Assembly (NCBI GenBank): GCA_964035545.1
Contig: OZ037767.1
Coordinates: 3,421,680 to 3,485,679 of the forward strand
DNA from: Bugula neritina
Lineage: Eukaryota; Animalia; Bryozoa
Length of the DNA: 64,000 nt
Reading direction: 5' to 3'
Made by a program: the position numbers and the translations under genes. Shown in pieces: positions 3,488 through 33,200 of this stretch. The number at the start of each line of letters is the position of its first letter. Position 1 is the first letter of the stretch. The notes beneath the pieces are model-generated. The model was given only the letters and a program-made list of their open reading frames with translations, did no database searches and was not told where the DNA came from.

Positions 3488-4189
3488 TCAATTATCGATC
3501 TTATCAACAATATTACACATAAGCCTATCAAGATTGAGAAGAGTTTGTTCGTCAGCATCATCTACGGCAGCAGTGTCAGCCTCAGATTGTTCCGTCGCAT
3601 CAGAGATATTGCTGAGCTGATGCAGCAAAGTCAGACTGGGCTTGACATCGGCAGCAGTAGCTGCTGACTGATTCTGCTTTAAGCTTTCCTTAACTTTCTC
3701 CAACTGTTGTTGAAACCTCTGCGTAATGTCTATTCTCTGCTTTTTCTGTACAGTCATCATAACCTTGATGGTCTCTCTAGCCTGATGTTGCCGATACTCA
3801 TTAATCAAATGATGCATGTTGATAAACAGCAAGCCAATGTCATCTATTTTCTCAGTTCTCTTCTCTGAGTCTGGTGCCTTAACGAGAATATCGAGTAAGT
3901 CTAGAAAACTAGTGAGTATCGAATGATTGAGCTTCTTCAACTCCTTTTTGTGTTCATAATTTTGTGGGTACAGTCGACGAACTCGTTGACTCTCTAATGA
4001 CCGTATGATACTTTCATTGGGGAAAAACGGAGAGCCAAACATTGAGTATGGTTCGCTAACGATACAAGCTGGTGGTTTGGGTGCTGTTCCAGCTGTGACG
4101 GCTTCATCCGTGTATTTATCAATATACTGTGATGGAGGCAGTGGCCATGAGGATGCTGATTCTTCCTCAGGGCGAAGTTGTGCTGCCAT
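3488..4189 (-). CDS. MED7: Mediator of RNA polymerase II transcription subunit 7, single coding exon, ~233 aa
   Basis: ORF contains PLPPSQYIDKYTDE, PYSMFG, IIRSLESQ, ELKKLNHSIL..FLDLLDIL and LLFINMHHLINEYRQHQARETI, which are hallmark MED7 motifs. First ATG is at 4189 (the ORF track starts at an upstream TTG). Splice acceptors lie just upstream at 4201 and 4208. Confidence 0.97.
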   Translation of the reverse strand: MAAQLRPEEESASSWPLPPSQYIDKYTDEAVTAGTAPKPPACIVSEPYSMFGSPFFPNESIIRSLESQRVRRLYPQNYEHKKELKKLNHSILTSFLDLLDILVKAPDSEKRTEKIDDIGLLFINMHHLINEYRQHQARETIKVMMTVQKKQRIDITQRFQQQLEKVKESLKQNQSAATAADVKPSLTLLHQLSNISDATEQSEADTAAVDDADEQTLLNLDRLMCNIVDKIDN

Positions 4190-4469
4190 TTCCAAAATAC
4201 CTGAAGCCTACAGAGAATGAGAAAAACTATTTAGATAAAATGTTTTAGAATTGCGTGAGATTAAGAATAATCGACACTTTAATAGTTACACCCTAACTTA
4301 TATTGATATTAAACATAAAATAGCTACTTCAAGCTGAAATTGCAAAATTTCAACTTGAAAAAAATTACATCTGAAACATTTTACATGATATGATAATGAT
4401 TCCTGAACATCTATTGACCTATTGCCCAGTAACTTTTTACTGTAGGTAAATTATTTAAAATTAAAGTAA

Positions 4470-10199: not shown

Positions 10200-10760
10200 A
10201 TAATCGTAGTGATAATATTAATATTAATAGTAGTAGTAGTAGTAGTATCGCTGTCATGATTATTTATTATTACAATTATGATTATTAATAATTAATTTTT
10301 GACACTCACACTGATAGTGATACTGTCATAGTGATAGTAAATGTAATAGTAATACTAATAGTAATAATACTACTAGTATTAGTAGCAGTAGTACTACTAG
10401 TAGTAGTACTACTATTACTTATTAGTTATTAGTATTACTATTAGTATTACTAGTACTACTACAGTACTAGTAGTACTAGTACTAGTAGTAGTAAAACTAA
10501 AAGTGAATGTTAAAGTTGATGTACTAGTCTACTACTACTAGTACTACTACTACTACTAATAATAATAGTAATACTAGTATTAGTACATTTATACTAATAT
10601 AAGTTTGAAATTAATAATTAAAGTAATGATTGTAGTTGATATTATAATAGCACTGATACTGAGAGTAATAGTAAATGTAATACTATTACTATTAGTATTA
10701 GTATTACTAATATTTCATTCATATTGATTCTGATAGCCATACTGCTATCTGTTTGTTATT
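10200..10760. repeat. Degenerate (TAG/TAC/TAA)n triplet tract with self-complementary blocks
   Basis: Sequence such as agtagtactactagtagtagtactactatt. Confidence 0.85.
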
Positions 10761-11601
10761 TGCACACATGCTGATGATGGCAATATCAATATCAAGTTAA
10801 TCAAGATGAATGAATTTATATATTAAATATAATTTTATAATAATATGAGTTAAAACATCTCATTGACATTATCACATTCAAAACTTGCTGATAGGCAGTT
10901 GGAACAAATTATATATATTGATTTTGCCAACAGATTAAAGAAGATTTAGAAACTAGTTATTAACCATAATACATTCTAAAAATTGCTTTGTAAGCAAATC
11001 CATAACAATTAAACCATCTATTTATTAAAATGCTGCTGCCACACACAGCCTAATCAAAGTTTAAAAGTTAACTCACATCCATCATATTGAAAAAAATTTT
11101 TTGCTAAAGAAAACAAAAGTGCTGATGAACTCTTGCAGTTTGACATGTAGATTTACTATGTTTTTATAGGAAACAGTAAATGAAAGGGTGCTTTATTTAA
11201 ACTGCCAAGTTTTAATAATTCTGGCGTAATAGTGTGAGTATATCTGTAGCCTACATGTTGAATTTTGCGCCCATTCTAATGTATCTTTGTTTAAAGACCA
11301 AATTGATTGGATAGCACTAGTTGTGTTATTGCATGAATAAATTTACGCCACCTACCCACCTACACAGAACTTTCAAAGTTGATTATTAGTATGCGTTTGA
11401 CCTTTTTTGCATAATGAAGTTCATTTGCATAAAATATTCTATAAAATAACAGCTATATTAAAAAAATGTTCAAATATTTGTAAACCTGTTTAAGCAACCC
11501 ATGATTTTGAGCTTCACACAGTCTGGGAGAATTTTCCTCTCTGTTAATGCCAGTCAGTTTAACTGGTTAGCCCATCTCAAGCCACCAATGAAACTGTAAT
11601 C

Positions 11602-14600
11602 ATGGCTGCCAGAAACCGCGATGATATCATACGGCTAAATGGAATAGAGGCAGAGCGAAAAATCACTTTACCAATGTGTAAGACACACTTTGCCAAGCAG
11701 CCTATGAAAGTGCAGAAGGGAATGCAGCAGTACATATATGACGATGCTGGTCAGTAAAGCAACTTTTATTCTCTCTGCCTTTTGATCCGAACTAATTGAA
11801 ACTCGTACTCATGTTTTTTGAATGTTATAAAAGAGTAGTATAATTGCTTTTCGCTAAGTTGTGGCTGTGCGATGTCACCTTACAATAATATATTTATTTC
11901 GAAATACCCGCATAATCTATCTCTTTGTGTTTGACAGGCTCGGAGTATTTAGACTGCTGTGGTAACATCGCGCACGTCGGCCATTGCCATCCGAGAGTGG
12001 CGCACATGGGGAAGAAGCAGCTGGAAATCCTATGTACTGCTCAAGTATGCAGAAAACCTGTCCAAAATTTATTGCTGAGTAATAATAGTTTTTATTAATG
12101 TCGAGTCAATTCAAATCGTTATACAACTCTTTTGTAAGAGGGTAAATGCCAATACGTTTAGACTCCGCCCATGTATGCATCGCTACTGTAGCTGTTTGTT
12201 GTTAGGGGTGTTTTGAAGTCTTTGTTGAATGCCATATATCAAGTCTTCAACAGAAGTGCTCATCAACCGCTAAGACTTATAAATTGTTATAAATAGAAAT
12301 TTTTATTGCTTATGTAAGTTTTTCTCAATGGTTGTTGGAGTTGTCTTCTCTGATGCTATTATGTATAGTATGTACATATATACAACTTTTATATGCTTGT
12401 AAAAATACTTTCTAGGGGCTGGTTAGTAGCCATGCTATTCTCTTTACACGTTTGAAGCTAGCAATAATATAATATATTTTATTTAGTCAGTATAATTTTG
12501 TCATCTTTATGGAAATTTTCTGCAAATTAAATTATCTTTAATTGCTAATAATGTGTATAGCATCCTAACAATGAATGGCTGCTATGTTAGAGTTAGACAA
12601 AATATTTTCTAGCTCCATATGGGTCTGAAGTACAATTTTTATGAATAATTTGCTGAATATTTTCCGCAATATGCATGTGCATTATTTCATATTTTTTAGC
12701 TTTCAAAACAATAACATTTTAAGCATTTTCAATCCTAACTTTATTCCACTTTCACATTCTGGGTACATGATCATAATATTTTTTCTGCAGTCATCACTTT
12801 GCCTTTTGCCAGCCTAACTTCTATACAATCCTCAAGTCATATGTTAATAGCTGGCATGAATGAGCTTTAGAATATTAGGCATTGTGTTTGTTCGAAGTCA
12901 TGGAATGAATTGTAAAAATACATACAAAATATGTTTAACAAATCTCTCAAGTTTTTGTTACCCATCAACACAATATCTGTATTAGTAAAAGTAAATAAAA
13001 ATTAGGAAAGAGTTGACGTTGAAGCAATTCTTTTAACCCACTATTTTTTATTAAAATTTAAATTTTCATATGTAATTTATTATTTTCCTCTGCCATCAGC
13101 CACGTGGCTCTGCTGGTAGCTTCTTATGTGTTGTATTGACAGGGCTTTGTGACGGACGTACAGAGTAGTTACACAAAGAAGTTGTTAACCACTGTGCCTC
13201 CGGGTCTATTTGACACCGTGCTGCTTGTCAACTCTGGATCTGAGGCTGTAGATTTGGCTCTTAGACTAGCTCAAAATTACACAAAGCGAAAAGACATCAT
13301 ATGCAACCAGCCCAGTGTATTTGGCCATAGCAGTACATTAGCTAGCTTCAACTACCGGTATATCAAGGTAAGTCTGTTTTTATATTTCCTGGTGCTTTAT
13401 GTTGAAACACATTTATCAAAAGTAGTTCCAAAACTTTCATTTATTTAGTAAAGTAAGTTATATTGTATATTTCAAAGGGTTATGGAGGCAAAGTGAGTAT
13501 TGAATCAAATTTAAACTTGTAGTTTTGTTATAGATTATTTCCTTATTCAAGTGTTACTTACTCCTTTTCACTAGCTTAGCTTAGTTTCTGAAGTGAGTGA
13601 GCTGTTAATCTGCTTTTAAGTCAGTGGTCAAAGTATGGAGAAGGGAGGGGTACGTCCTAAAAAGTGACAGTAGTCTTAGTGTTAAATTATGCCATTTGGG
13701 TCACAGGCTACTCTGGCTCATGGAGTGGGGTGCCCGGGTAGACTGCCCTCTGTGCAAGTAGAAACAAATCGGAGTTCAATTTCTAACTTTAACTCAAAAT
13801 GTTAAATATTTTCAAAGCAAAGTAAACTAGAAAAAAGATTTTTATTGAATTGCACTTACTGTGAAATTTGAATAGAAATCAAGTAAAACAATTTTATTTG
13901 CACCACGTCTATTGGTTGTTGTTGGAGTTTTTTAAATAAAGTGATTTATTATGTTGATACTTATGACATTTATCTAAAATAATTTGTATCAACTTGAAAT
14001 TTCTAAAAATGAAAATAAATATATTAAAAAATATAACAGATGAAACAGCTCTTTGGGGTAGCTATATGAATAAATATCAATAAATTATAATAATAATAAT
14101 TTCCATATTTCAGCTTTTCTTAAACAATGTGAGAAACTTTTGACAAACTATTCCCGCCCCCATTATCAGAGAATTCGTGCAAGGGTGGGGGTTACTGTTA
14201 GGGTTAAGGGGATACCAGGACAAATGGTAAGGGTTTGAGGTACCCTTTCAAACCTCCTAACTTTGACCGCTGCTTTCAATGCTAATTTAAGCTCCATAGT
14301 TAGTCTGTTTGTGACAGTTTGCACTCGTATAGACTCACGCTGCTTAGTTTACAGTGTTTTCCTTGATTTTCTACTAGAGTTTTGTCATCCACTCCCCTCC
14401 CACTCCAAATGCATGTTATTAATGGTGTTCTGATGTATATTCTTAGCACACGGATTTCAAGCCTTATAGCTGGGTTCATCACATACCTATTTGTAACTCG
14501 TACCGAGGGGCGTATGCAGACTCCCCTACTCCAGTGGAAGATGCCCTGGCTCACATGAAAGATTTAATACTGGAGTTGGAGAAGAAGAAAACACCAGTAA

Positions 14601-17600
14601 GCATATGACGCATAGATGTTACAGAGCAGCTCAGACTATTGCTGGGCCATTTGTGATATTAGAAAATAATTAGTTCTCTGCTACAAGTAAAAGTACTCAA
14701 ACCATGTGACCAGCATGGTGAGAGGATTGAAATCTTCACTATCAGGGGTTCTCGCCATCAGGGGTTCTGGCAGGGGTGGAGAGATGAAACTGTTGAGGGT
14801 AAGGCAGGATATTTTCTGCCAGCAACAGATTATACTAAACCTCATCTCTGGCCATTATTTTGGTTCATTTAGATGTTTCATCTTCTGGCAGTTAAGTATG
14901 AATGACGTATCATAAATACCTAATAATTGGAACAGTTCAGTACATGAGTTCTCCACAGGGTATTACTGGGTAGGCAAGATGTGTGACTTTCTCCTAGTCC
15001 CAGTAAGTGCTGTCTAGCATATGCAGGTAGTGTGTTTGTAGTATCTCGTAGAGAGTAGTCATCTTAATTTAGACCAGTGACAGAGTACAAGAAGTAGTGG
15101 ATGGTGTCTGTATGTGTTGAGTGTCCTTTTTGTCTTTCTTCCACACCAGCTGCCAGTTTCACAATAGAACTTATAACATATAACCATATTAGGTGAAATT
15201 ATATTTGAGCATGCTCAAGGCATCAGCTGTGGTCTAGGGGCTAAAGCGTTTGCTTAGTAAACGCGAAGTCATGAGTTTGAAGCCGACAAAGGCCATTGGT
15301 GATGTTAGGAAGAGCATCTAGTTGATATATCTATCTTTCTACTCAGTAACCTCTATAGCTGTCAGTAAACCAACACATGAGTGTTTTATGTTATATTTCT
15401 TATTCAAGAATAAAATTATTAGTTGTACTATTATACGGAATCATGTACATTATTTATCGTGCAGCTGCACTTTTCTTGCTACAGCCTGAATATGACACCA
15501 TAGCACTAAAGTGCAAACTTTCTGGCTATTATAAGGTTGGTGAATAAATTATCTTGTTTGTGAAGCGGTGACAGTTTTTAGCCGCTAGGATTGTTCATTT
15601 TAGGTAGCTGGGTACCTGCTGGAAACGATCAACACGTCGGGTGGTAATCTCATATCCCCCATCGAGTACCTTACAGCCGCAACTAAACTGGTTAAAGATG
15701 CTGGAGGTCTGGTCATAGTGGATGAAGTACTGGTAAGTTTATACTCGCACGAGAAGTGATGACACTTACCACTGCTTTTTCTCTATGGTGTTTACTCTCA
15801 TGTGTTTACTATTAGAGGTGTGAGCTAACATTTTCAGCATCAACTAGGAATTGATAAATAACAAAATTGATTAAATCTACATAATATTTTTTGATCATTT
15901 GCTGGATAAGAAGCCAGTATGTCTGGCCAGGTTGACAGATAGCTTGGTAGTTATGGTAACAGTATGTAATACACATCATGTAATACACATCATGTAATGC
16001 ATCATGTAATATACATCATGGAACGCAACTAAGAATTTAATTAAAAATTGGCTTTTCCGTTTAACATGGGTAGTTATACTTTAAATAGAGTTATGCTATT
16101 GTGTATGACATACAAGTATAGAAAGTGATGTATATTCCTTTATATTAATGGCTCATTGTGCAACTGGATTAGCTAATTAAATTATCATTAATCATGAAAA
16201 GAAAAATGTAATAGAATGCATATCCTGGAGTTTGTAGCCCAGCTAGTGAGATTGTGCCTGCCATTCTTTTCAATTTCAATATTAATATAGCCTCAATTCT
16301 GCTCTTGCAGGCTGGGTTGGGACGATTAGGTATGCATTGGTGGCCATTCCAACATTTCAACTTCAAACCTGATATACTGGTGTGTGGAAGGTCCTTGGGT
16401 AATGGACAACCACTTTCTGCTGTCTTGACCACCCAAGCAATTGGTAAGTTTGTGGTGTAAGTGGAACCATCTAAGTTTATATAGTGTAAGTAAAGTGTAA
16501 GTAAAACTTTGAGAGATAAGGAATATTTTTTCAGCAAAAATAAAATCAATTTTTAATGAAATAAATTACAATTTAATTTCAAGAATTCACATTTTTTATT
16601 ATGCATTTCGTCATCTCTTTGTTGTTCTTATTCTCTCGTACATCAATTTCTCTACAAGTTAGAACAGTTGTACTGTTGACTATAGCATAATAACCATAGC
16701 ATGCTAGATGATTTCAACTGCCCTAATAGATGCGCTAGTAGAAATCTTGTAGAAAATGCTAGAAGAGCGGCTAGTAGAAGCTCGAGAGTCCAGTAGAATA
16801 CTAGTAGATGTCAATCAAACATTTTGTGCTTATGGTTTACTCACACGGCATCTGATAAAGTCTTTTTCAAATCAAATGTGAAAAGTTGAGAGATGAGGAT
16901 GAATATATTTGGATCGTTTAGCCTGCTCTATCTTGGAGTATGCCAACTCCTATGGAGGGAACCCGGTGTCTTGTGCCATGGGAATAGCAGTGCTGGATGT
17001 AATCAGTGATGAGGGCATGCTACTGAGCTCTACGGCTGTGGGTAACCACCTTAAGTCTGGCCTCACTTCTCTCATTAATAAACATCACAACCTCGGTGAT
17101 GTCAGGGGGATAGGACTCTCGCTTGTCCTTGACATAGTTGAAGCACAGGTAACCCATCTTTGGTTATATTAATTTTTTTCTTTTTTTTTCATTCATGAAA
17201 TATTTGAGTTTTTGGTCAAACGATAGTGCTAAGAGAAATTTAGTAAATTTGGTTGAGTACACAACTCCAAATAGCTAGTATACAAAGTATATACTTAGTG
17301 TACGATTATATGCATTGTGTACTATGCATTTTATACTAGCCTATATACTTTGTATATTATATAATATTGTGTATGTTATACACGTTAGTATATGCTTTAT
17401 TGTTTACTTTTTATAATATCTACATTGTACATAATATACTTTGTATACTATATACTCAGTATATTATGTACAATGTACACTCTGCACTAGAATATTCTAA
17501 ACTGGTTGGTATTGCAGACTTCTAAGAAGCCGTCAAAAGACATAGCGGAGAGGCTGTCATATTTGCTGAGAGATAAATATAAAATATTGGTTCCGGTTAG

Positions 17601-18728
17601 TTGAAGATTATTTTTTACCCAACAGACTATATGTTACATGTCGCTTCTTTTTTCTGCCGTCACTTTGTGATTATTCAAAAATTGCATTTAGATTTATCTG
17701 CTTATGTTGAAACTTATGGCAATTTATGTTGACTTCAGTTTTCACATTGTTAGGTATTTTGGTACTAAAACTGTTACACCTTTACACTAACAAGATTTTC
17801 AAAGCAATAGAGCACACAACTCCTAAAGTACCAACTTCATAATATCTTCTGCATATTTAGAAATGTTGTTGAAAAATATGTCCAGTGATTGAAGCTAATA
17901 ATTAACAGTCGGAAATGAATGCTAAAGTCAGTAGCGATTGGCTGAGATCCATACTCATCAACCAATGACTGGAGTCAGTAGCTAATAGCTGTTAGTTGAT
18001 TGGTTGATATTATTTAGGCTGATGGTCCTGATGGGAATTGTCTGTTCATTAATCCACCTCTTTGCTTCTCATTGGATAACTCTAGAAAACTGGTTCAGAG
18101 TGTAGACTTGGCTCTTACTGATGTTGAAAATGGCGTTACTGAGACCGTCAAATCCTTATATGAACTGAATGAAGAATTTCAGGTCTAGTGTTTTAGCTAT
18201 GTACATATACTCTAGTATTTACTGTAGTTTGGTGTGTACATACATTCTAGTATGTATGTACCTTGATATGTACTCTAGTATTTACTGTAAGTTGATAGGT
18301 ACATACTCCAGTATTTACTGTAAGTTGATAGGTACATATTATAGTATTTACTCTACCCTGATATGTACATAATCTAACATGTTTTCATTACCTTGATATG
18401 TACACAATTCTGTAATTTGAGTTGTATGGTGCAAGATGTATGAAATAAGATGCTATTATTTGGGTTTAAACTGCTAAGCATAGTTGTATTGTACGAGCTC
18501 AAGCTATAATGGCGTGTTCTTTGCTTCAGGTTTTCACTTTATGACTTTTCAGGAGTACTCTTACTGTACACACATTATTTACAGCTGCTGTTAAACAACA
18601 AATATTGTTGACTGATTTCTTAGATTCCCGGTGACATATTTGATGGGTTCATGAAGCGCCGTCCTAGTAGTTGTGACGATGACTCGGTTGCGAGTAAGAT
18701 GGCCAGAATAGAGCAGGAACTTGACTGA
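11602..18728 (+). CDS. ETNPPL/PHYKPL (AGXT2L)-like class-III aminotransferase-fold protein, ~488 aa, catalytic Lys replaced by Arg
   Basis: Exons 11602-11749, 11938-12044, 13143-13367, 14447-14596, 15604-15732, 16311-16443, 16922-17148, 17518-17595, 18018-18182 and 18624-18728 join in frame. Motifs: QYIYDDAGSEYLDC..NIAHVGHCHP, VNSGSEAVDLALRLA, DEVLAGLGR, PDILVCGRSLGNG, YGGNPVSCA, GDVRGIGL, ADGP..N.L.INPPLCF. The last exon is less certain because an in-frame GTC TAG follows 18182. Confidence 0.92.
15219..15325 (+). mobile_element. tRNA-derived SINE, truncated copy
   Basis: A-box TGGTCTAGGGG, gcttagtaaac, decayed B-box and ggtgatgttaggaagagcatctagt; aligns by eye with the copies at 50861 and 63522. 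Confidence 0.75.
15965..16022. repeat. Short 12-14 bp tandem repeat (tgtaatacacatca), ~4 copies
   Basis: Read directly from the sequence. Confidence 0.8.
18200..18410. repeat. ~33 bp minisatellite (gtacatactctagtatttactgtaagttgatag), ~5-6 degenerate copies
   Basis: Read directly from the sequence; explains ORF 18169-18372. Confidence 0.8.
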
Positions 18729-21700
18729 TGACTCATAGGACAGGGGTGGCAGCAATGATAATGTCATTCCATGAAACTGACAATGTCTTGTAACTAAGAA
18801 AAATAACCAATTTACTGTTTTTGGTGCATTAGAATATTCTAGTCTATAGTAGTTCAAGGTCATTTAACTGAAAATCAAGTTAGGGTTTAAAGTTGGCAAC
18901 TCATTCCCCAGTCATACGGCATTCAATATGGCTGTAGTTTTATTGTATAAATTTGGAAAAGGTTATATGCACAATGTCGTTTTATAATAGCTTTTGTTCT
19001 AAATTTCATTTTTTGTAATTTTTTTAATGACAGCACATTCATACTCATGTTATGCTGTTGAAGAGCATTTAATTCTTTTTCTCCAAAGCATTGATTAATC
19101 TCAAATTTGTGCATTTTTATTGTAAAATTATCCGCCACACTAAATAATAAGATTTATGTTATTTTATGTTGTATATTTGCAACTATAGTTGTGTATATAG
19201 TACGCTGTATAGTATTGTCTTTTATGTAAATGTTGAGAAGCATGTAACATGTTTTATTACAAATTTTTCATACTTTGAATTTATTAATGCTGAAGTATAT
19301 GGTGTAATTTTGCAATTTGTAAATTATCCAAATGAATTACTTTTTATTGCAATAAATGGTAGAATGGCATTTGACGGCGTTGGAGATGTTGACGAATTCA
19401 GCTAACAGTATTTCCAATGTTTTAATATTTCATTATGATCATTTTGCTCAGTGGTTTCAAAACAGCGAAGTGATTTCTCCATGAGACTTGTTGGGTCAGG
19501 GAAAATAAAATGCACTTTATACTCTCTATTCAACTATGTTATATTTCTCATGTTTTATCCCTACAGATTCCAGAGTTCTTCATACAACTTGATGTAACTG
19601 TGTCTCTATGATATGTGGTCACGAAATTTATTCAGCTGCGTTCTAATTAAAGGCTCCTAAATACCACTATTTCTATTGTAGATTTGTAAATTGTATATTT
19701 AAGACTATTGGTATCAATTTTCATTTTACAATGAACCCAACTGAGACCCTATTAAATTTCAAAGTCAAGGTAAAAAGTGCCTTGTATTTTATTTTAGGCT
19801 TTGGGTAAAAATGGTTATAAAATTATGTAGTGTGGTGGTGTGCCATTTTAAACTACAGTGCATGTACAGTAGGTTCGGGCGGTGCACCAGGATGACCTGG
19901 AAAACTGTACAGCTGCTATTTCTACTGCTGGAGTTATCCACTCTTGTGCTTCATGCCATAATTCCATTCTTGGGGAGTTATGTGCACCTGGATGATCTGA
20001 AAAACTCAAAGTTGTACCTGCCTGCAATATCAATAAAAGTATTATTTACTTTTATATAGTAATTTTCACAGTACGTAAGTGATTTTCTATCAACATCTTA
20101 TTTTAGTGCTGAAAGGAACACGTGTGCTAAATCAAGAGCAAGCGAAAGGATGTGTCATTGAGCATGCTCTTTAATAGTAAAACACCTACATATGTGCATG
20201 AAATTTGGCGTATATATTTTTTGTAAACTATAAATGCTCTAAATTTGCATACAAGAACTGTGAGCTTGATTTTATTAGATTTCTTCAAATGTACATCTTG
20301 AACTATAAATTCAACATTTATTTTACTCTTATCGCTATATTATTTGCTGTATAAGCTACATAAAAAAAGTATTTTCTCTGTTTTCCTGCATGTAATTTTT
20401 TGCCAACTTAAACGCAGTATTTAAGTAAGCGCCTTAAATAAGTTATATAAAACTTTGTAGGTTATTGACCTTATTTATTTAGGATTATCTGTTGTCACAT
20501 ATTAGCTCACTGTCAGCCACAGTATTACAGCAAAATTAATGTAGCCTGTTTTCCATTGAATATTTCACGAAAACAAAAAAAAAACCAATAATATATTGTA
20601 ACTACCATAAATACTAAAAGCTTATGCTCTGAGTTTATAATTAACTTATATTTCATCATCTGCACCTGTAAAGTAGTCGTGGAATGTGTAATTTCAAAAT
20701 ACAAGTAGATTAATATTCTTTAGTTCCAGTCATGAGCTCTTTCTTTATAATCATGTACGCTATAATAAGTAGCATTTACTGGTTAATCTATTACATTAAT
20801 ATAGATATACAAATGCGATGTATACGCATACAAATTATTTCAATAATCTGTTGTCACTGCTATTTTTAAAATAACCCATTGTGTCAATTGACTAAGTTGT
20901 ATTAGCACAATCAAAATGTATTGGTTATTCATTGGCTATCCATATCAATAAATAGCTGCACTGGTTAACCCATTCTCTATCATTGTTTTACGCCATCAAA
21001 TGTTTGAGCAGTGAAGTATTGAAGCTAATGGTGAAAGTAGCTGACAGTCTACAGTATCGTGTTATCAATAAACCATTTCTATTTGTTTGAGGGCTCGCAA
21101 CAGAATAAGCAGTTAGTTCTAACAAGACCCTAGTCAGTTATCTTTGACCGACTGATAAGTACTCAAATTAGTAGTGGAAAGGAATGCAGGATAACACAGC
21201 ACAAATCTGTAAGGAGCCGGATAGCTATAAGAAAGTATATGTAGTCTACAGCACCTACTAATAATAAGTTCACATCGACAGCTTCATATAAACAATCTCT
21301 AGCCACCCAGAGCTGACTGCACTCAAAGCATAAACATACCGATAGAGTGAAGTTGATGTACTCATTTTGGATTACATTCAGCTGATAGTCTGCAATTAAA
21401 ACAACCTACTTTCCAACCAGTTAAAGAAGGTCAGTCATTTTTACTTGTACATTTTTGTTGTAAGATTAATTTAATTAGGCAACTAGGACTAAATAAATGA
21501 TAAACTTAAAGAAAAACAAATTTATGTATATATAGTCATTTAAAGTTTATCATCTATTTAGTACTAGCTGCATAATTAGTTAATCTTATTGCAAAAATGC
21601 AAAAACAATTTTAGTGTTTTTATAATTTTGGGCATACTTATCCTACCCAGTTTAAAATGAATAGAAAATAAAAGATTGCCAGTGAATGATAATTGCAATT

Positions 21701-24700
21701 ATGTAATTTCCTGGCAAGGCAACAATTTCACCAAATGAACACACAGTACTAATACTGTTGTGTATCTAACAAATATTATTATGAGTAAAGGATGACTCTT
21801 TAAACAAAAAGGAATTCTCTTGCAGTGCTAATAGAAATATATATGTGACAGCAGGGTGTAAGATTAAACTCTGCTTTATTAATTGCTTCCCTTTCCAGTT
21901 GTAATCTCTCTGAGCAGTGAAATGAAGTAAGTATGGTGATTAAATTAGTTATTAAAGTACTGTATAAGTTTTCTAGGTGCAAGAAGTTCCGAGTACACCA
22001 ACTCTAACACATGTTACTCAGAACAGAAAACTCTTAAAGCTTTACTCTGTACAACCCAATTTATAAAAAAATAAAGCTGAAGCTATTCTATCTATGAATT
22101 AGACAGTTGCAGTATTATTTTTCAAACACATAAAGCTACTAATTAAAAAGTTGAACTCAGTAAACATAGAGTATTTTTGAGCTTGATAATTGATTCTCTT
22201 TAACAGCTACAAGAAAAGTTAAATTAGACGGAGTTAAGCGTAATATAAAAAACAGATTTAAAATTAAAATAATTGTCAACTTGAGATTTTATTAACCACA
22301 AAAAAGTGATTGAAACAATTTATTATTAGCTTAAATTTAGGTATAGAACGTTTTTCTTGCTTGCTCTTTATAATGCTTGCTAAGGAATTCACACAGAACG
22401 TTTCAACCCGATACAGTGTAAATAACATCAACTTTTCAGATGTGTTGTCTTTACCAGTTGTGTTTAGATAACATCTTGCTGTGCTACAGTTAGAATAAAC
22501 CTATCTAGACATGTCGTACAACTGCTGTTTGCTGATGCCTTTCATACTATTATAGACTCAGTATCGTCTTTTGTTTACAATATTTTTCTTGTTTTTTTCT
22601 ACCAAAGTCTTTCTGTTAGTGGCGCCATTAGTGAGTAATAGTGTTTTGTTCAGCCAACAAAAAGCTATGTATTATTACAATATGGCGGTGCTTATCTAAC
22701 AATGGGTCGGACTGTAAGTTCACCTTTCACACAATGGTCTGTGTACAGAGTTAATGTTAGTGTCAACTACCTATAAATAGAAACACGTTTGCCTGATGAA
22801 CATTTATTTGTTTGGGTCCTGCAGTTTTATTGATATCCAGTTACGAAATGGTACAGGCCACCCTGGACCATGCTAAATTATTAAAAAAGTTATAGAACAT
22901 GTGCAGTAGTCTGATTAAGCCACTCCACTATGACTCACTTCCAATCATACGGACAGCTGCGATCACCTTTGTTGGCAGCTACCAAAGACTATTAGTTATG
23001 TAATTAAACAATAGAAAATTTCTTAAGAGATTCATTTATTTAAAAACTATTATTATCCTCATATCATTCAGTTTATTCATTCTTTAGTAAATCTTCAATG
23101 AAAATTATCAAATTTCGTTTGTTGCACACAAAATCCTCAATTGATTGTGATAATAATAAATAGTAAAATTTTTAAACTAGAAAATGAAATCTTACATTGA
23201 ATTTCAATTTTCTTATAAAAAGTCAAGTTTATTACTATGGCTAGCTACTGCAAATTTAGAATTTACTAGCAAATATTAAACCTAAAGTCTCATTATCAGC
23301 TGATTGTTATTAATTATTAACTTTTTATAATTTGTATAATAAATTAAATACAAGTAAATAGTACAAAGATTCAATGTAAGCAAACATTGCAAAGGGTAAA
23401 GAATCATAAGTGTCAACAAAAAGCTATCGTAATGTTTTCCTGTAAAGTGTTTCTTATCCAGGACCTGCAACGAGTTGTTTGCAAAGAGTTTCTAGTGACA
23501 ATGTCTAGTGGTTTGCTTTTCCAGGATGGTATTTTTTGTTAATTGGTTTTCAAATGGATGGTGTAACATTCCACCTGCAGTATTCACTGTATAATTATAT
23601 TATCGACCATGAGAAATTCAAACAAGGCTAATGCTCTATCAATAGTAATGGTAGACCTTTTCTTCAAGCCGTCTTATTTCAGTCCTTGAAATATGAAGCC
23701 CGCTCTTTCATAGCCTACAAAAGCAACATTAGATTTTAATCACAGTTCACATTTCCATAACTGGGAGTTTGTCTAACATTTGCTACGGCAAATAAGCTCA
23801 CTTCTAGCTGCCTGACCGTGTGTAGCAAAAATTTCTCATCAGACTAGGGTGTTTATATTAATGAAGCAAAAACTTTGATTTGCCATAAGCATCCACTAAT
23901 GGGACCTTTATCATTAGTTAAATTTTAATTTAAAGAAACAAATCTCCAGTTTTAAAGTTTTATGAAGTAAACTATCTAAAGAAAAAACATTTTCTCTCGA
24001 GTTGATTATTATTAAAAATTGTAATATTAAATCAAATAATGATTGATATCATTTTATACAACATTTTTTTGAATTGAAATTAAGATTTTACTAATTACGA
24101 AACATTGACACACAAACGTACGGTTTTTGTCAGCTCTATAACAGCACAACCTTCAAATATTGAACACATCTTGATACTTTCAATTATACATATTAACATT
24201 AACCCAGATGATTCATTAACATAAAATTTGGACTACCAATGTGAGTAATCTAGACATCAGTGTTTATTTCAATTTATCAGTGAAATTTAGTCTTTAGTTA
24301 ACTCAATTTTGAAGCCGGTATTATGCTCAGAGTTGCATACGACACACTACACCATGTCTTCTGATTAAAATCAATGACTAATCTTATTCTATGCTAGTTT
24401 TTCCAATCACCCACTAGTAGCTTTGGAGATTGATTGTTAAACACATAACTCGTGACTACACTTTTAGACTAGCGTATTCATAGGTATAGCCTAAGGCCTA
24501 ACTCTTTAATAATAATTTTAAAACTGATACGCTTGATTAAGAAGTTTGTTGTTCAAGGTCATAGAGTAATTGCTTAATTAACACAATGGTTGTGCGGAAA
24601 TACATGCTTATTCATTACAAACTAATGATCAACCTAATGGCTTGTATACAATGAAGAGAGCTGAAATGTAACTCTAATCTCATATAATAATGCATAACCT

Positions 24701-27562
24701 GCAGACCTTACATATTGTAATGAGTTAAACTAAAGATTTCAAAAGATTTCTGAAACACCTTTGAATTATCATAATTAAACACATTATGTTCATTACCATA
24801 TTGCTATACTAACTTATGAGTCATCATGCTTTGAAACCAAAGCTTTTTTTTAAATTAAATGCTTTGAATATGCATGCTAATAACTACTAAGAATTTTCAA
24901 CTAGCCAATTGGATAAAGCAGAGCACCTAACTTCATAGCATTTGAATACGCATCCTTTTATAATCTGCTACTGTTTAATCTAAATATTAAAATGATGTTC
25001 CTTGAGGCTAAATTAATGTCTTAAAGGCCAAATTGACTAATATTTTTGGTTGCAGGTCTCTCACTAAATTAAAGGTTTGTTGCAACTACGTAGGGAATAC
25101 TATATGATCTTCAGCTATGTTTAGGATTACATAATTATTGCTCAGTAGCTATAAAGCAATAAAAGTGAAGAAGATAAGAAAGAAATATCCCATTTGATAG
25201 GCACTTTTGTAGCCATTAACATTTTAAATTACAAATACAGTTCTCTAAAGAGTATAACTTATCGTACAGCCTATTCACCCTCTTCAAGTGCTACTTTAAC
25301 AAGCAATTCTGCCACTTTAGATGCTAATTATAGGCTTTTTATAATCTTGAGTTATGCAATTAAATTGTCATAATTTAATTTTATTATGCAAAAGATGAAA
25401 TATGGTAATTCCAACACATTTAACTCACAATGAATGCTAAGACATAAAAACGTCTTTAATTTAAGTATTATGATAATATCAACGTGCTAATAGCTGAAAT
25501 ATGCAAATGATTTTATCTGAGATACCAACAGAAAGTTAATCATTCTGAAAGTGAGGTCTTGTAAGTTATACATAAGTTGTGTACAGCTGTTGATGTCTGT
25601 TTAAATGGAAGCTGATTTAAAAATCAATTCTAAAGTCAGTTAAAAGTTAACTAAACAAATCATTTATAACCCGTATTGTATTACAGTCAAAGTAAAACAA
25701 CTGCAGCAGCATTACTAAAGAACTTATAGATTGACCATAGCCTATCCGCAAGCAGCATATATATCTACAATATGAAGTAAATATGAGTTTTCACTAAAAT
25801 TTGAACTATGAAATTTGACCTAGCTAAAATTTCCTTTTACGTACATGTTCATTTAGCTAGCTCTGAACATTTACACAGGTTTTAAATAATTAGTGAATTC
25901 ATAGAGCATTTGAACACAGAATAAAATTGTATTTTCTGTTTGGAAAATTTGCTGTTTGCTTTCACAATACTTTATTACAAGTTACAACATATTACGTAAT
26001 ATAATGACATACAAAAATTCCCATAAAAATTCAACAAGTTCTTTTTCATAGCTTAAAATTGCAAAAGCTAATTCACCTTTGGCTGTTTATGCTGCTATTA
26101 TTGTTTTGCCACATGTTACGCAGACACCCATTTCTAAAGCATTTCGTCAGTACGAGACAACTCCAACAGCAAGTGATAGATTTTTCCTGCTTTGACTAAT
26201 TTTCAATAAGGTGGTAAATTTAAATAGTTTTAGTTTTGGCAATAAATTAGAGAACACAAAAATCTGATTTAGGAATCACTTTGATGCAAATAGCTATTGC
26301 AGTATTAACGTTCACATTTTTTTTTAAACCAAGAAACTAATTTTAGCCAATATACTGTTGAGGTAACATTAGAAAGCCTACATTTTTGCTGCCTGTAAAA
26401 TAATCATAAACTCTAGGTAAATTTGGATTACTTGTGTTGCAAACTTTCATTATACCTGACTAAGAATTATAGTGAGAAATGCAAATTCCTGATAGTATAA
26501 GTATGCTATTATATACATGTAGTATCTTGTATAGTCACAATTATGCTTTCATTTAAATATTACATAACTTTATGTTGCTTGGGCCACCCATTAGATGTTT
26601 TATCTACTCCTAAATTCGTGTACTGAAAGCCTTTTTTGAAAATAAAATACATCCTAGTGGTAATGACAGCACAGCATACAAAGTTAGGTTTTGGAAAGCT
26701 TCAATTTAGAAGTTGCCTTCCCTCCATGAACTTGTCAGCTAAGATAGTATGAAACAGCAGACTTATATCAGCCATTGAAGTCGTGAGAAGAAATTTGAAA
26801 CTGGGAAAATTTAATATTCCCAGAAAATTGAAAAGTTATTTGTTTACATTCTCCGCTGCAATTTTGTTAATGAAGTACAAACTACAACAACTATATTCAA
26901 CAATTGAGCTTGCATTCCTGGGGTATCCATTAAAAAGATGACCTCTTAATAAAATATAATCTGTAACTTTTCTTGCATACTATATACAAGTATATTATAC
27001 TAATAGTACTATTACCAGGCATTTTCCCATCTAGCTCTCCACATCTGCTTGGACTGCATGTGTTGTCTCTCAGGTTTATGCAAATATTCCGGTTGACATT
27101 CATTGTTCTGCAACCAAAACAGTTTTAAAATTTTTATTCTATAAATTGGTGATTTGCATTTTGCACTAGCAAGTTGGTGTGAATAAATGCGGCACTTTTT
27201 GGTTACATAACTTGAAGCAAAATATTGATACAACTTACATGCTGTAATCAAAAGTCAGGCACCAACAATAATTGTTTGTGGTCAAAATGTTTGTTGATAT
27301 GCTGGTGTATAGCTTTTATGTCTTCGTAATTAACAGCTACCCTGCAGAGGAATGGACAATAAATCCTCATTAAATTACACCTAAAGTTCTAGTTGACAAG
27401 CGTTTAAGCTTTACAGTAATGTATGTACGTTATTGAATCATAACTGATATAAGAGGTTTATTGCATTAGTCTAAGTGCATTGGCCAGTCAATGCAGTATG
27501 CGTACAGTTGTGCAGTGCTCTTAGCTCTCTCCTTCATAATTCTACAACTGTACATATTTCAG

Positions 27563-27628: not shown

Positions 27629-29400
27629 GTAAGTTGCAGTTAAACTAAGTAAACTATGAATAAACCTAAACTTCTAGCAAAATGAGTACCATTGTACCAA
27701 TGCATACACATATAAATATATTTTGTTGTGTATAAATCTCCCTTTATATTATAATTAATATTTATATTCAGAATTTAAAATCTGAAAAGTTGCCTGGTGT
27801 TAACACCATGAAATTTTCCAGGTTTTTGAAAGTACCTTTAGGCTATAAGCATTGAAAAAGAGAATCTATAAACTTAGAGCAATGCTGTACAGGTACTGCA
27901 GATAGGTGTAAGAAATAACAGCAACCATGATTGATTTAAATCATTCTCACTTTAATTAAGTTTATATGCCCGATATTTGCTGAAATAAATTCATAGCTAA
28001 AAAGCTACGATCTCTTTTGCACCTTCTTGCGTTGCATCTAGGTGTAATAAAAGAGTTTTTCTGTAGCCTAAGTTCTTTAGGCTTTAGGTTTTGGCTAAGG
28101 CATAAAAGTAAAACCCTACCCTTCAAACATCCAAGTGCAATAATTGAAAATAGTGTTTGCAGTTTAATATTTTAATATTATATTTTAGGTAGAATTCTAC
28201 TTATAATTAAATATTATTTTATATCTAATTAACTATCATCAGCTATAACAGAGTAGTAGAAATATGTGTAACCTCCATTTATAGAAGCATTTGTAGGACG
28301 TCAACACTAATGATGAATTTACTGTATGTAAAAGTAATTAATTTAAAATAACACAATGGGATATGAATTCATAGTTTCATAAATAGAACATCAGCACTTG
28401 ATGTGATAAGCCTTTGGACCATTATATTTCCCATCTACATGTATAACAGTAACTAACCAATAAAGTGCTAGTGTTATACTTTACTGACTACTAAGGAAAC
28501 ACTATACCTTTCATAGTTTCATAAAGCAGTAACATAAATATACCATTACTAGGTAAACATTCTTGGAATCCTATTTGATACGCTTGTGACTGCACTTAGC
28601 ATCATTCCTCGTAGTTGTATTACATGAAACTGAGTGGCAATAACGTGCCCTACTTTAATATAGTCCAGTAGCTTTATCTGCAGGTGAAAACCTGTCTGCT
28701 TCAAAAATCTCCTGCTGAGTGTTTATAGTTTATGGCAAGACTTCTGCACTTGCAACCTAAAGTAATAATCAAACTACAGCGATTGGTATAAAAGCTAATG
28801 GCAGGTAAGGCATTCTGGGAAAAAGTAGTTGCACCACATGATGCCGTTGGCCATGTATGAAATATACTTCTCTCGAAAGGCAAACTATTCATCAGTTAAA
28901 TAAGATATAATCAGGGGTAGTTAAATATGGTGCAACTCAATGCCTCCGTGGGATATGAACACAGCTTTATTAAATGGTGCGGTTTGAATTTAATGTCCAA
29001 GGGCTAAAGTGGAAGCTTCTTTCACGAGAAAGCGTAATATCTTTTGCTCATATTTAAATATTCAATCAAGTGTTTGCGAGAAATTGAACTGATTTTGTAA
29101 AAAACTGCTATAAGCTGATTAAACTATTGCGTTCTTTTGTTGCCCATAAATCAAGATTTAGAGGCCATTGCTATATAATGATGTCTTATTGATAGCAGCG
29201 CAAGAGCTCATTGCTTAAAATTTAGGAGCTACCTATTTATACACCATACAACCATTTCCCCAAGTCTAATTACTCTATAAAGTGTAAACAAAGCAGTGCA
29301 GGATTCCTGGCTACACCTTGTTTAGACTGTATGAGTTCCTTGTGGTAGTTGTTTTCATGAGAATGTTTAGAGACAACGTTATTGTAGATGCTGTAGGAGG

Positions 29401-30212
<812 letters not shown>

Positions 30213-33200
30213 GCATGTATCTAGTAGCAACTGTTATAGTCATGACTATCTGTCAAAATACCATTAGCATGAATCATACGTTATATTGTTGTATTATTGG
30301 TTGCATTGAGCTGTGAGAAATTGAAAAGGAAAATATCCCTTAGCAAAGCAAACACCCCTTCATTTGTTCTGCTACCTCAATTCATTCAACTTTTGATTGT
30401 TGGGAAACTGTTCTGATGATTTTTGTATTCTATTATCCTTGCTGATTTCTGAAAAGTGGTCAGAGTTAAAAGTTAGCCAAATCGAAGTTCCTCAATAGAT
30501 AAGGCTCAATGAATCGATGGAATTCAATAAATAATCTTGTTTTTGTAACCATGGAAACATATTGGAATAAATTGCTCATAGTAGAGCTCTATAAAAAGTG
30601 TTGCACATACGCTTAAGTATGATAACTGGATCTTATAGTCTTTTATCTCTCAATGTTTGCCAAGTTCAAGATAAAAGTTTGGCAAGATGAAACGTTATAA
30701 GTTTAAGTAAACCTTGTTAACATGTAGGAATATGTTTGATGATGGCGCAGTACACCTGATTCCTCACGTATACTAGATAACTATGATTTAATATAATGTA
30801 TGCTGTACTTCCACTATAGCTCTATAGCTAGGACTGCATTTTTTATAGGGTGGAGAAAATGGGTTGTTAAGGGGGAAAAAGAAAAAATATTCTTGAGATA
30901 AGTGGATCGATGGGGTTGTTTAGAGGGGTAAAAAGGGGGTTATTGGGAAGGGTGGAGAAATGGGTTGTTAAAAAAGGCTGCTAAGAAAAACAAGCTTGTG
31001 AACAGTAAAGACCTTAGAGAATATTAACCTTTGATTCATGTGAAAAGTAGTTACATTTGAGGGAAAGATGATTCCTAAATGGCTGAAGAGTGTGACATCA
31101 GCCAATACCAATCCTCATCAGGGCTATATTATCATATCATATTTTAAGCAACACCTTTATTGGGTAATAAGCAAACAAGCATATCAGTTGAAACCGTCCT
31201 TGTGAGGGGAGTGAAGGGGATGGATTAAATTCTGCTTTTTATGTTGTTATGTTATGTTAGAACCTAAGGCGTCTAAACAGCTCAATGTAGCCTAAGAACA
31301 TCATATTCAACCAAATTTTTCTACCAGTTTTTAGATTAAAACCATAAAATTAAAACTTAGAACTTTATGTTTCAATGGCTTCAACCATCACTGCAATATT
31401 TAACTTGAGCTTCTAATAAGCAGTAGTTTAACAGCCAAGATTTTCAGTATGTGTTCACTACTACAATAGAAAGGATGCTGAGTGTGACATGCCGTATTCA
31501 ATGACTTAATGGTTTGCATTGTGTAGAATACATGTTCTCCAATAACAGCCTTACTTGTCAGTATATTTGTATAAGACACTGGCTACTGAGGCTTTACACA
31601 AGTTAAACAAAGCTGTATTTGCTCTCCGCTCTTATCACATCTGTGACTCACTCACTCCAGACGAGCTCTTGTTTATCATTGAGGATGTATTTAGTGGTGT
31701 TGGATTGCTAGTATCACAGTGTCTTCAGAGCTATCTCTGTCTAGTATTCTCACCTACAGCACCTCGTCTGTAAGATTAGTTTACCTTCCAGGTCTTGGAG
31801 GAGGTTGAAATGAGAGCCGTCTCCAGTAAATCTCATTAATATTTGTGGTGAGTCACAGCTGCCAAACCATTAAGGTTTGTTTATCCAAGCTTTATTGGAG
31901 CATTTATTAATAGCTGCAGTAATTCAATTAACTACAGCAAAGTTCCTGCTAGAGTTACACAGGAGAATTCAGTCTTAGTCTATCTTATTCGTACACGTTT
32001 CTCTAAAATGAAGTTGTTCGTAGACTATACCCGTTTTTAAAAAAAGTCTCAAATACTTTGTTGATATTGGAAAGAAAGTTATAATTAACGCTCAAAATTG
32101 TTCAATTGATATCCAGGCATAAACTTAATTAATCAGATTTGAAAACAAGATTTTGGGATGGAGGTTACACCTTCATCTTGGTTTTTTGCCTGAAGGTCAA
32201 ACTAATAGTATATATTTGTTGGACATTCTAACAACTTTTTTAAACTGAAAGTCTAATTCTCACATTTCTTATAGAATGCAATACTGCATTCTCAACTTTG
32301 CTTTGATAACTTATACATGAGTATTTATTTCGATAAATATTCAGTAGGCGTATGCATAATTCAATTTCAACTGAAATATTGGTTATGTATATTAATTCCC
32401 TCAACTTCCTTATATTAGTTTCAACATTATAAAAACTGCATATCATGGCATCATCGAGTTATAAAAGCAACAAAGTAAGGGACTAGTGCTATAGATTTAA
32501 TGTAGATAATGAGTAGGTTACTCAGTTAGTTTGGAATTCTAAATACATGTGCCTTCTTTGGTCTGACAACTCCAATATACATGATACCGGGCTAAAACTG
32601 GAAACTTGCCAAAATTTGTTATTAAGAAATTCAATTCTGCAACCCTTTTTTACTTGAATTATAAAATTCAAATTGAGAGTTGAGTAGAGCTTTAATTCAA
32701 GGGAAGACCACTTTTTATTATTCAAACTCATCAAGTTAGCACTTTTCTTTGTGAAGTTTGCAGCTATGATGGTGACAACAACAGACAGTTTTATACCAGA
32801 ACACTATTTAAATATGTTCTAATTGTAACGTGTTGCTCAGTTCAAACTACAGCAAAAGGTGAGAATTTCTCACTTTCATTGCGTCACAGCTATCTGATTT
32901 TAGACCAGTGTATGTTGGATTAAATTCAGCTGGAGGTGTACGTCAAGACCTTTGGATGCTTAAATATTATTCTATTCTGGCCAGGCAGCAGACGAATGAC
33001 TGCCTCTTTAGATAAGTCAGCAGTTGCAGTTGTTTTCTGTGAAAATATTGAATTTGAACAGCACAGCTTTTGAGGTATTTGCTATCTAAACACCAAGAGC
33101 CCAACACTTCATACCTTATCTCCTTCTTTTATTTTTCTAACATTTTTGCAATCCCGTACTTTGAACATTCATTAGCTATGCACTAGTTGTAGCCAAAACC

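Follow-up and report, generated by a model that had tools for sequence, protein, structure and literature searches.

Arginine at the Schiff-base lysine position in a selectively maintained class-III PLP-fold protein of the bryozoan Bugula neritina

The lysine that holds pyridoxal 5'-phosphate (PLP) as a Schiff base is the most conserved feature of PLP enzymes, and to our knowledge natural homologues that selection has kept without it are rare, the known examples being LCB1 and the sugar dehydratases that carry histidine instead. The latter, ColD and E1 (AscC), are sugar 3-dehydratases that depend on pyridoxamine 5'-phosphate (PMP), have an aminotransferase fold and are still functional with histidine in place of the Schiff-base lysine. 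The antizyme inhibitor AZIN1, an animal homologue of ornithine decarboxylase, has lost cofactor binding and catalysis and is kept as a regulatory binding protein. LCB1 (SPTLC1), a conserved fold-type-I homologue within serine palmitoyltransferase, lacks the PLP lysine together with other catalytic residues and functions as a non-catalytic subunit (PMC3794620). Here we describe a gene of the bryozoan Bugula neritina whose product has the class-III PLP fold and carries arginine at the position of this lysine; it lies in a 64,000-nucleotide stretch of contig OZ037767.1 (assembly GCA_964035545.1, forward-strand positions 3,421,680 to 3,485,679), which we refer to as the window.

The human ethanolamine-phosphate phospho-lyase ETNPPL (AGXT2L1; 6TOR) and the 5-phosphohydroxy-L-lysine phospho-lyase PHYKPL (AGXT2L2) share the class-III PLP fold with the Bugula protein, ETNPPL being its top sequence match in the PDB, and the motifs HVGHCHP, NSGSEA, DEV, GxGRxG, GNGxP, YGGNP and DVRG are common to them. 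The Bugula protein departs from both in having arginine for Lys278, Val-Phe for Tyr139-His140 and leucine for Gln249 (human ETNPPL numbering throughout), in its basic/acidic tail and long branch, and in belonging to a separate clade, here called group B. Nearest to it by tree and identity (at most 44%) are group B proteins named 'PHYKPL-like' or 'ETNPPL-like' in molluscs, annelids, brachiopods and crustaceans, among them those from Owenia fusiformis (P0186), Lingula anatina (P0197) and Panulirus (P0055). These names come from automatic annotation; the proteins share a TAQGF-type motif and the C-terminal tail with the Bugula protein, whose gene is a member of the same orthologous group, but they keep the lysine and AYHG, and most keep DEVQ. 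The lysine-less precedents stand further away. LCB1, a membrane-bound member of the alpha-oxoamine synthase subfamily, is of ancient origin throughout the eukaryotes and is proven to pair with a close paralogue as a heterodimer, whereas the Bugula protein is narrow in distribution; ColD and E1 are bacterial enzymes of another subfamily with a catalytic histidine, whereas the Bugula protein has arginine and has lost presumed ring contacts; and AZIN1 differs in being of fold type III with a known partner, antizyme. A literature search for an ETNPPL or PHYKPL pseudoenzyme, or for a lysine-less aminotransferase, found no relevant paper. Public databases already hold the protein sequences as unnamed or misnamed models, and a lysine-less homologue of ETNPPL/PHYKPL is described in no paper that we found.

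Searches with the window gene were run exon by exon, and full-length fold and tree work was done on two public B. neritina orthologues, KAF6022885.1 (P0164) and KAF6017194.1 (P0366), which differ from the window exons by a few residues. Exon 6, flanked by a ttgcag acceptor and a gtaagt donor, has a 44-residue translation that contains KPDILVCG-R-SLGNGQPLSAV. Its top match among PDB sequences in a phmmer search was human ETNPPL (6tor_A, E 3e-8), whose PDIVTMG-K-PMGNGHP aligns with it column for column and sets Lys278 opposite the arginine; the second match, the Arthrobacter phospholyase 5g4i, likewise has its Schiff-base lysine opposite this residue. Exon 6 alone scored 28.1 bits against Pfam Aminotran_3 (profile positions 235-276). 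An earlier reading of the window, made without database searches (the sequence-only reading), had placed an AGG arginine codon at the position of the aldimine lysine and had given the family motif as PDIVTMG-K-xxGNG; the alignment bears out the placement, and the motif is correct.

Replacement of this lysine is rare among the relatives that we collected. All 84 motif-covering sequences among the 150 nearest representatives have lysine there. A pattern search of 365 fetched proteins found lysine in 306, and the only in-register exceptions were two Bugula entries with arginine and one barnacle protein with glycine. The Bugula entries are the two orthologues named above, one recovered by profile search (P0164) and the other by cluster look-up (P0366); GenBank annotates both as 'hypothetical protein', and UniRef names P0164 'AGXT2'. 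A scan of metagenome contigs with an arginine-type exon-6 alignment recovered 80 loci, among which arginine was seen only in L031, on the same contig as the distant orthologue L027 described below, and the close match L030 has lysine; at most of the remaining loci the motif was not located by simple pattern, so that these are unscored rather than shown to be lysine-type. A word-index search with exon 6 alone found only a B. neritina exon fragment, full-length kin being hidden by the length filter of that search. Neither an alternative lysine-bearing exon 6 within the introns nor a second copy of the arginine gene was found, exon 6 having one genome match only.

The gene is maintained by strong purifying selection and is not a decaying pseudogene. 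This is seen in a comparison with L025, a 16-kb B. neritina contig from a Joint Genome Institute (JGI) metagenome that encodes the P0164 protein and is collinear with window positions 10329-26217. The nine introns are 83.7% identical between the two and contain 783 gap columns, whereas the 1,467 coding bases are 95.8% identical and contain no indels at all. Over exons 1-9 we counted 50 synonymous and 5 non-synonymous differences, which gave Nei-Gojobori synonymous (dS) and non-synonymous (dN) divergences of 0.18 and 0.0048, respectively (dN/dS 0.027), the binomial probability of 5 or fewer non-synonymous changes among 55 under neutrality being ~1e-26. Exon 10 differs at 7 positions, 6 synonymous and 1 non-synonymous. 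The dS of 0.18 marks the Bugula-type animal of the window as diverged from the sequenced B. neritina. The sequence-only reading had argued against decay from a frame that it judged intact over ten exons with canonical splice sites; that frame runs through ten exons with GT-AG borders for 488 codons, and the dN/dS estimate, which it had proposed as a check, falls on the same side. At the critical codon itself the window has AGG and L025 has AGA, a synonymous difference that leaves arginine in both. Because independent assemblies of related genomes carry AGA and CGG arginine codons at this site, a local assembly error is ruled out. The earlier statement that A-to-I editing could not restore the lysine also holds, for neither A-to-I nor C-to-U editing converts AGG, AGA or CGG to a lysine codon.

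The substitution is also old, judging by a diverged orthologue that shares it. When 1.84 billion representatives were searched with exon 7, the B. neritina fragment came first, followed by two short fragments at 54-56% identity. One of these fragments lies on contigs L027-L029, which derive from one species in three independent samples (mutual identity 99.9-100%, GC 45-49%, short introns). They carry exons 5-9, interrupted by introns at positions and in phases identical to those of the window gene, and their exon 6 reads PDIVVAG-R-SLANGQP with the arginine encoded by CGG. Over exons 5-9 the L027 orthologue is 56% identical in amino acids to the window protein, and the two share 20 derived residues in 226 columns, each found at a frequency of at most 6% in lysine-type relatives. 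These residues sit at otherwise highly conserved positions and include K to R itself, T to V at -3, H to Q at +6 (GNGHP), T307S and G366V, among others. Since the diverged orthologue has both the arginine and the 20 shared derived residues, the Lys-to-Arg change dates to a common ancestor of Bugula and L027. A clade with lysine replaced by arginine, which the sequence-only reading had thought worth seeking, thus exists and comprises Bugula and at least one distant lineage. The same exon-7 markers occur in a third lineage, represented by contig L026 (metagenome label BRYA16-1), which is too short to hold exon 6. As none of the 20 shared derived residues is lysine, there is no sign of a relocated catalytic lysine in exons 5-9, the N-terminal half being absent from L027; the lysine that lies eight residues upstream of the motif arginine in Bugula is valine in L027.

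The rest of the active site is partly changed and partly kept. An alignment with 36 lysine-type relatives, animal and bacterial, has 85 columns in which 35 or all 36 of them agree; the Bugula protein keeps 73 of these columns and breaks 12 (N116V, Y139V, H140F, I149F, S150N, P171C, Y189A, Q249L, K278R, L332M, A336S and G368V). We take Tyr139 and His140 (AYHG) and Gln249 (DEVQ) to be contacts of the cofactor ring and of its O3'/aldehyde edge. The position of Gln249 is leucine in Bugula and asparagine in L027, and is thus no longer constrained. Retained are the Asp of DEV, which presumably binds the pyridine nitrogen, a conserved Glu, the NSGSEA/GSEA phosphate cup, DVRG, and the GGNP loop, whose Thr we expect to bind the cofactor phosphate of the partner subunit and is here Ser, so that the hydroxyl is kept. 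The pocket looks remodelled on the ring/aldehyde side and preserved on the phosphate and N1 side. The fold as a whole appears typical: P0366 matches Pfam PF00202 (Aminotran_3) at 207 bits (cut-off 30.5) over profile positions 10-400 of 403, and an AlphaFold2 model of the orthologue has a mean predicted local distance difference test (pLDDT) score of 84, with the core above 90. In a Foldseek comparison of this model with the PDB, 6TOR came first (template modelling (TM) score 0.94, root-mean-square deviation 2.2 Å, 37% identity), followed by 5G4I (TM 0.91) and then by other class-III enzymes. Among group B proteins that bear the lysine, Lingula anatina P0197 has DEIA for DEVQ and AFHG for AYHG; since it keeps the lysine without the canonical Gln and Tyr, loss of these two residues alone is no proof of inactivity.

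We placed the protein among its relatives with a maximum-likelihood tree of 40 sequences, in which Bugula sits on a long branch and its exact sister is unsettled. The animal proteins fall into two groups. Group A of this tree holds vertebrate ETNPPL and PHYKPL with sequences of amphioxus, hemichordates and insects, and group B is made up of mollusc and crustacean sequences with those of an annelid, a brachiopod and one hemichordate. Within group B, the Bugula protein falls inside the protostome part (Shimodaira-Hasegawa-like approximate likelihood ratio test, SH-aLRT, 100), and its forced placement in group A was rejected (log-likelihood difference 24.9; approximately unbiased test, p-AU 0.003). 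By descent it thus belongs to the ETNPPL/PHYKPL (AGXT2-like) superfamily, but vertebrate ETNPPL and PHYKPL are not its orthologues: it is a member of a separate, mainly protostome sister group, which corrects a detail of the sequence-only reading. Its closest full-length relative is that of O. fusiformis (44% identical), and between phyla the lysine-type proteins of group B show 51-56% identity over the C-terminal half. The Bugula terminal branch measures 2.46 substitutions per site against a group B median of 0.24, or about ten times as much, and the sequences describe a burst of change that coincided with the lysine's loss and gave way to the strong constraint of the present.

Two further observations concern group B. 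Its members P0186, P0197, P0055, P0047 and P0328 have a C-terminal tail with an acidic run, a basic KRxR-like patch and a Y-D-D-x-D-like end, which was not seen in the group A sequences inspected and which could be a localisation or interaction signal; the Bugula version reads KRRPSS...EQELD (window 18624-18728). A group B homologue of the barnacle Amphibalanus amphitrite (P0328/P0367; XP_043245865.1 and XP_043198671.1) has glycine at the lysine position (TLG-G-TLGNGHP). The glycine is present in two gene models on different contigs; the protein has DEVA for DEVQ, keeps AYHG, and has a terminal branch of 0.95 and an odd composition. This is a possible independent loss of the catalytic lysine, and together with the Bugula case it hints at recurrent loss within group B.

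The B. neritina genome also contains a separate canonical lysine paralogue, of the kind that had been suggested for comparison. It lies at C9:7331938-7336304 (L020), has AYHG, ADEVQ and GKPMGNGHP all intact, and is of group A type (summed bits 469 with a group A query versus 368 with a group B query). Other class-III genes of the genome are an OAT-like gene on C1, an ABAT-like gene on C4 and, at C9:4836521-4840074 and C9:4852851-4855409 (L021 and L022), a tandem pair of AGXT2-like genes ~16 kb apart, both with MAKG at the lysine position in exon-wise alignments. With 188 bits, an intronless open frame of 259 amino acids at C131:12333-13016 (L001) matches Aminotran_3 more strongly than any other locus of the assembly; we take its motifs to resemble those of the bacterial glutamate-1-semialdehyde aminomutase HemL, which animals are not known to have, and contig C131 may come from a bacterial symbiont or contaminant.

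The window gene occupies positions 11602-18728 of the forward strand (Table 1), and its model matches KAF6017194.1, which is 488 amino acids long. A nine-exon model ending at a TAG at 18186-18188 was dropped when the public orthologue showed a donor at 18182/18183 and a tenth exon. Elsewhere in the window, a single-exon open reading frame (ORF) of 235 amino acids at 3488-4195 on the opposite strand, upstream of the gene, encodes the mediator subunit MED7 (Pfam PF05983, E 3e-45). A repeat of biased composition seems to occupy 28000-32000, where GC is raised and GC skew is strongly positive (0.40 and 0.23 per 2-kb interval); the long ORFs that overlap on its two strands at 29403-30316 gave no Pfam match.

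Table 1. Coding exons and active-site codons of the arginine-bearing gene (window coordinates).
Feature	Position	Strand	Remarks
Coding exon 1	11602..11749	+	ATG at 11602, donor GT at 11750; 100% identical to B. neritina P0164 (residues 1-49)
Coding exon 2	11938..12044	+	Carries the conserved HVGHCHP motif
Coding exon 3	13143..13367	+	NSGSEA phosphate-cup motif kept, Val where lysine-type proteins have Asn116; AYHG motif changed to SVFG
Codons GTA TTT, Val-Phe replacing Tyr139-His140 (human ETNPPL numbering)	13317..13322	+	Tyr in 35/36 and His in 36/36 lysine-type relatives
Coding exon 4	14447..14596	+	Canonical GT-AG borders
Coding exon 5	15604..15732	+	Ends in VDEVL; Asp kept; last codon CTG (15730-15732) gives Leu replacing Gln249
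Coding exon 6	16311..16443	+	Reads PDILVCGRSLGNGQP; site of the Lys-to-Arg change
Codon AGG, Arg at the Schiff-base lysine position (Lys278 of human ETNPPL)	16389..16391	+	AGA in L025, CGG in L027-L029
Coding exon 7	16922..17148	+	NSYGGNP, Ser replacing the conserved Thr; DVRGIG kept
Coding exon 8	17518..17595	+	Donor GTTAGT
Coding exon 9	18018..18182	+	Donor GT at 18183 (CAG|GT); in-frame TAG next if unspliced; splice used in GenBank models P0164/P0366
Coding exon 10	18624..18728	+	Basic-then-acidic C-terminal tail typical of group B; stop TGA 18726-18728

Taken together, these data lead us to regard it as fairly probable that the gene encodes a selectively maintained, non-catalytic class-III PLP-fold protein whose role is one of binding, as a sensor or carrier of a ligand or as a regulator. 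On every count that can be judged from sequence the protein answers to the definition of a pseudoenzyme, as first proposed: the arginine, the lost near-invariant residues and the purifying selection all point this way, and the protein would have lost phospho-lyase or transaminase activity and may bind a ligand in a regulatory, non-enzymatic role. In the history that we propose, the Schiff-base lysine changed to arginine in an ancestor of several lineages, which would have left no internal PLP aldimine, and the same lineage acquired Val for Tyr139, Phe for His140, Leu or Asn for Gln249, Val for the Thr at -3 and GNGQP for GNGHP, in a period of rapid sequence change that then gave way to strong purifying selection. 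Phospho-lyase or transaminase chemistry would have been lost while folding and dimerisation continued as in the relatives; the remaining pocket may bind a phosphorylated ligand non-covalently, either PLP/PMP or a phospho-amine; and the arginine protein would act in binding, sensing or regulation, leaving phospho-lyase chemistry to the canonical lysine paralogue elsewhere in the genome.

Several points weigh against a non-catalytic protein. The Lys-to-Arg change keeps charge and length, and other PLP enzymes, when mutated to lack the lysine, can still hold PLP non-covalently with very slow turnover; complete loss of activity therefore does not necessarily follow. An enzyme of altered chemistry would also explain why the Asp, the Glu and the phosphate cup are kept. 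The function presumed lost is that of vertebrate ETNPPL and PHYKPL, extended by analogy to group B proteins that carry automatically assigned names. In addition, the protein collections searched yielded no copy derived from a transcript.

One alternative, which we judge unlikely, is that the protein is still an enzyme, holding PLP or PMP non-covalently and using a different base for a new reaction without an internal aldimine, in the manner of ColD and E1. Both the retention of 73 of 85 near-invariant columns, the Asp, Glu and phosphate cup among them, and the very strong constraint on the gene (dN/dS 0.027) would suit such an enzyme; moreover, the Arg, the Val at -3 and the Gln at +6 are conserved between lineages only 56% identical, so that the site looks remodelled rather than abandoned. 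However, arginine serves poorly as a general base, Val and Phe have replaced the presumed ring-stacking Tyr and its neighbour His, and the variation of the Gln249 position within the clade (Leu versus Asn) speaks against precise positioning of a cofactor. Nor is any natural class-III enzyme that functions without the Schiff-base lysine known to us, and literature searches brought up none.

Class-III enzymes are obligate dimers with active sites built from both subunits, and the Bugula protein could accordingly be a silent partner, like LCB1/SPTLC1, that pairs with a lysine-bearing class-III subunit such as the group A paralogue on C9. It would supply its N-S-Y-GGNP loop in trans to the single active site of the partner, and would tune the activity or location of that subunit. 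The residues expected to act in trans (the Ser/Thr of the GGNP loop and HVGHCHP) are kept while presumed in-cis ring contacts are lost, an intact lysine paralogue is present in the same genome, and human LCB1 (hLCB1), which lacks the PLP lysine, pairs with hLCB2 (PMC3794620). We nevertheless find this arrangement rather improbable: the sole lysine paralogue of the subfamily is distant (~46% identity in the best exons, the other group, other intron positions), which makes compatibility of the interface doubtful, and a pure partner subunit would have no need of the conserved in-cis Asp and phosphate cup.

A broader proposal, to which we give comparably little credence, is that the arginine proteins form an old clade, possibly bryozoan-wide, with a conserved Arg-Val-Gln site that would either carry out aldimine-free chemistry on non-covalent PLP/PMP or serve as a sensor or regulatory subunit of phospho-amine or vitamin-B6 metabolism. 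If this were true, the barnacle Lys-to-Gly change would mean a lysine-independent function for the whole of group B. Least of all do we credit an artefact or a dying gene, that is, a one-base assembly or allele error or a recent pseudogene, which is extremely improbable given that separate assemblies, from at least three genomes, spell the arginine with three different codons and that the coding sequence is free of stops as well as indels.

The automatic names 'AGXT2' and 'phospho-lyase-like' given to the bryozoan protein and to the barnacle glycine protein are probably functionally wrong. The reach of the finding is limited by its narrow taxonomic range, and it has as yet no link to a biological process. 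Within the ETNPPL/PHYKPL family, the Bugula gene is nonetheless a clean natural case, in which an old change is combined with strong constraint, a partly remodelled pocket and a canonical paralogue in the same genome as a control, and each lysine-less homologue of this kind informs what the fold does beyond aldimine chemistry.

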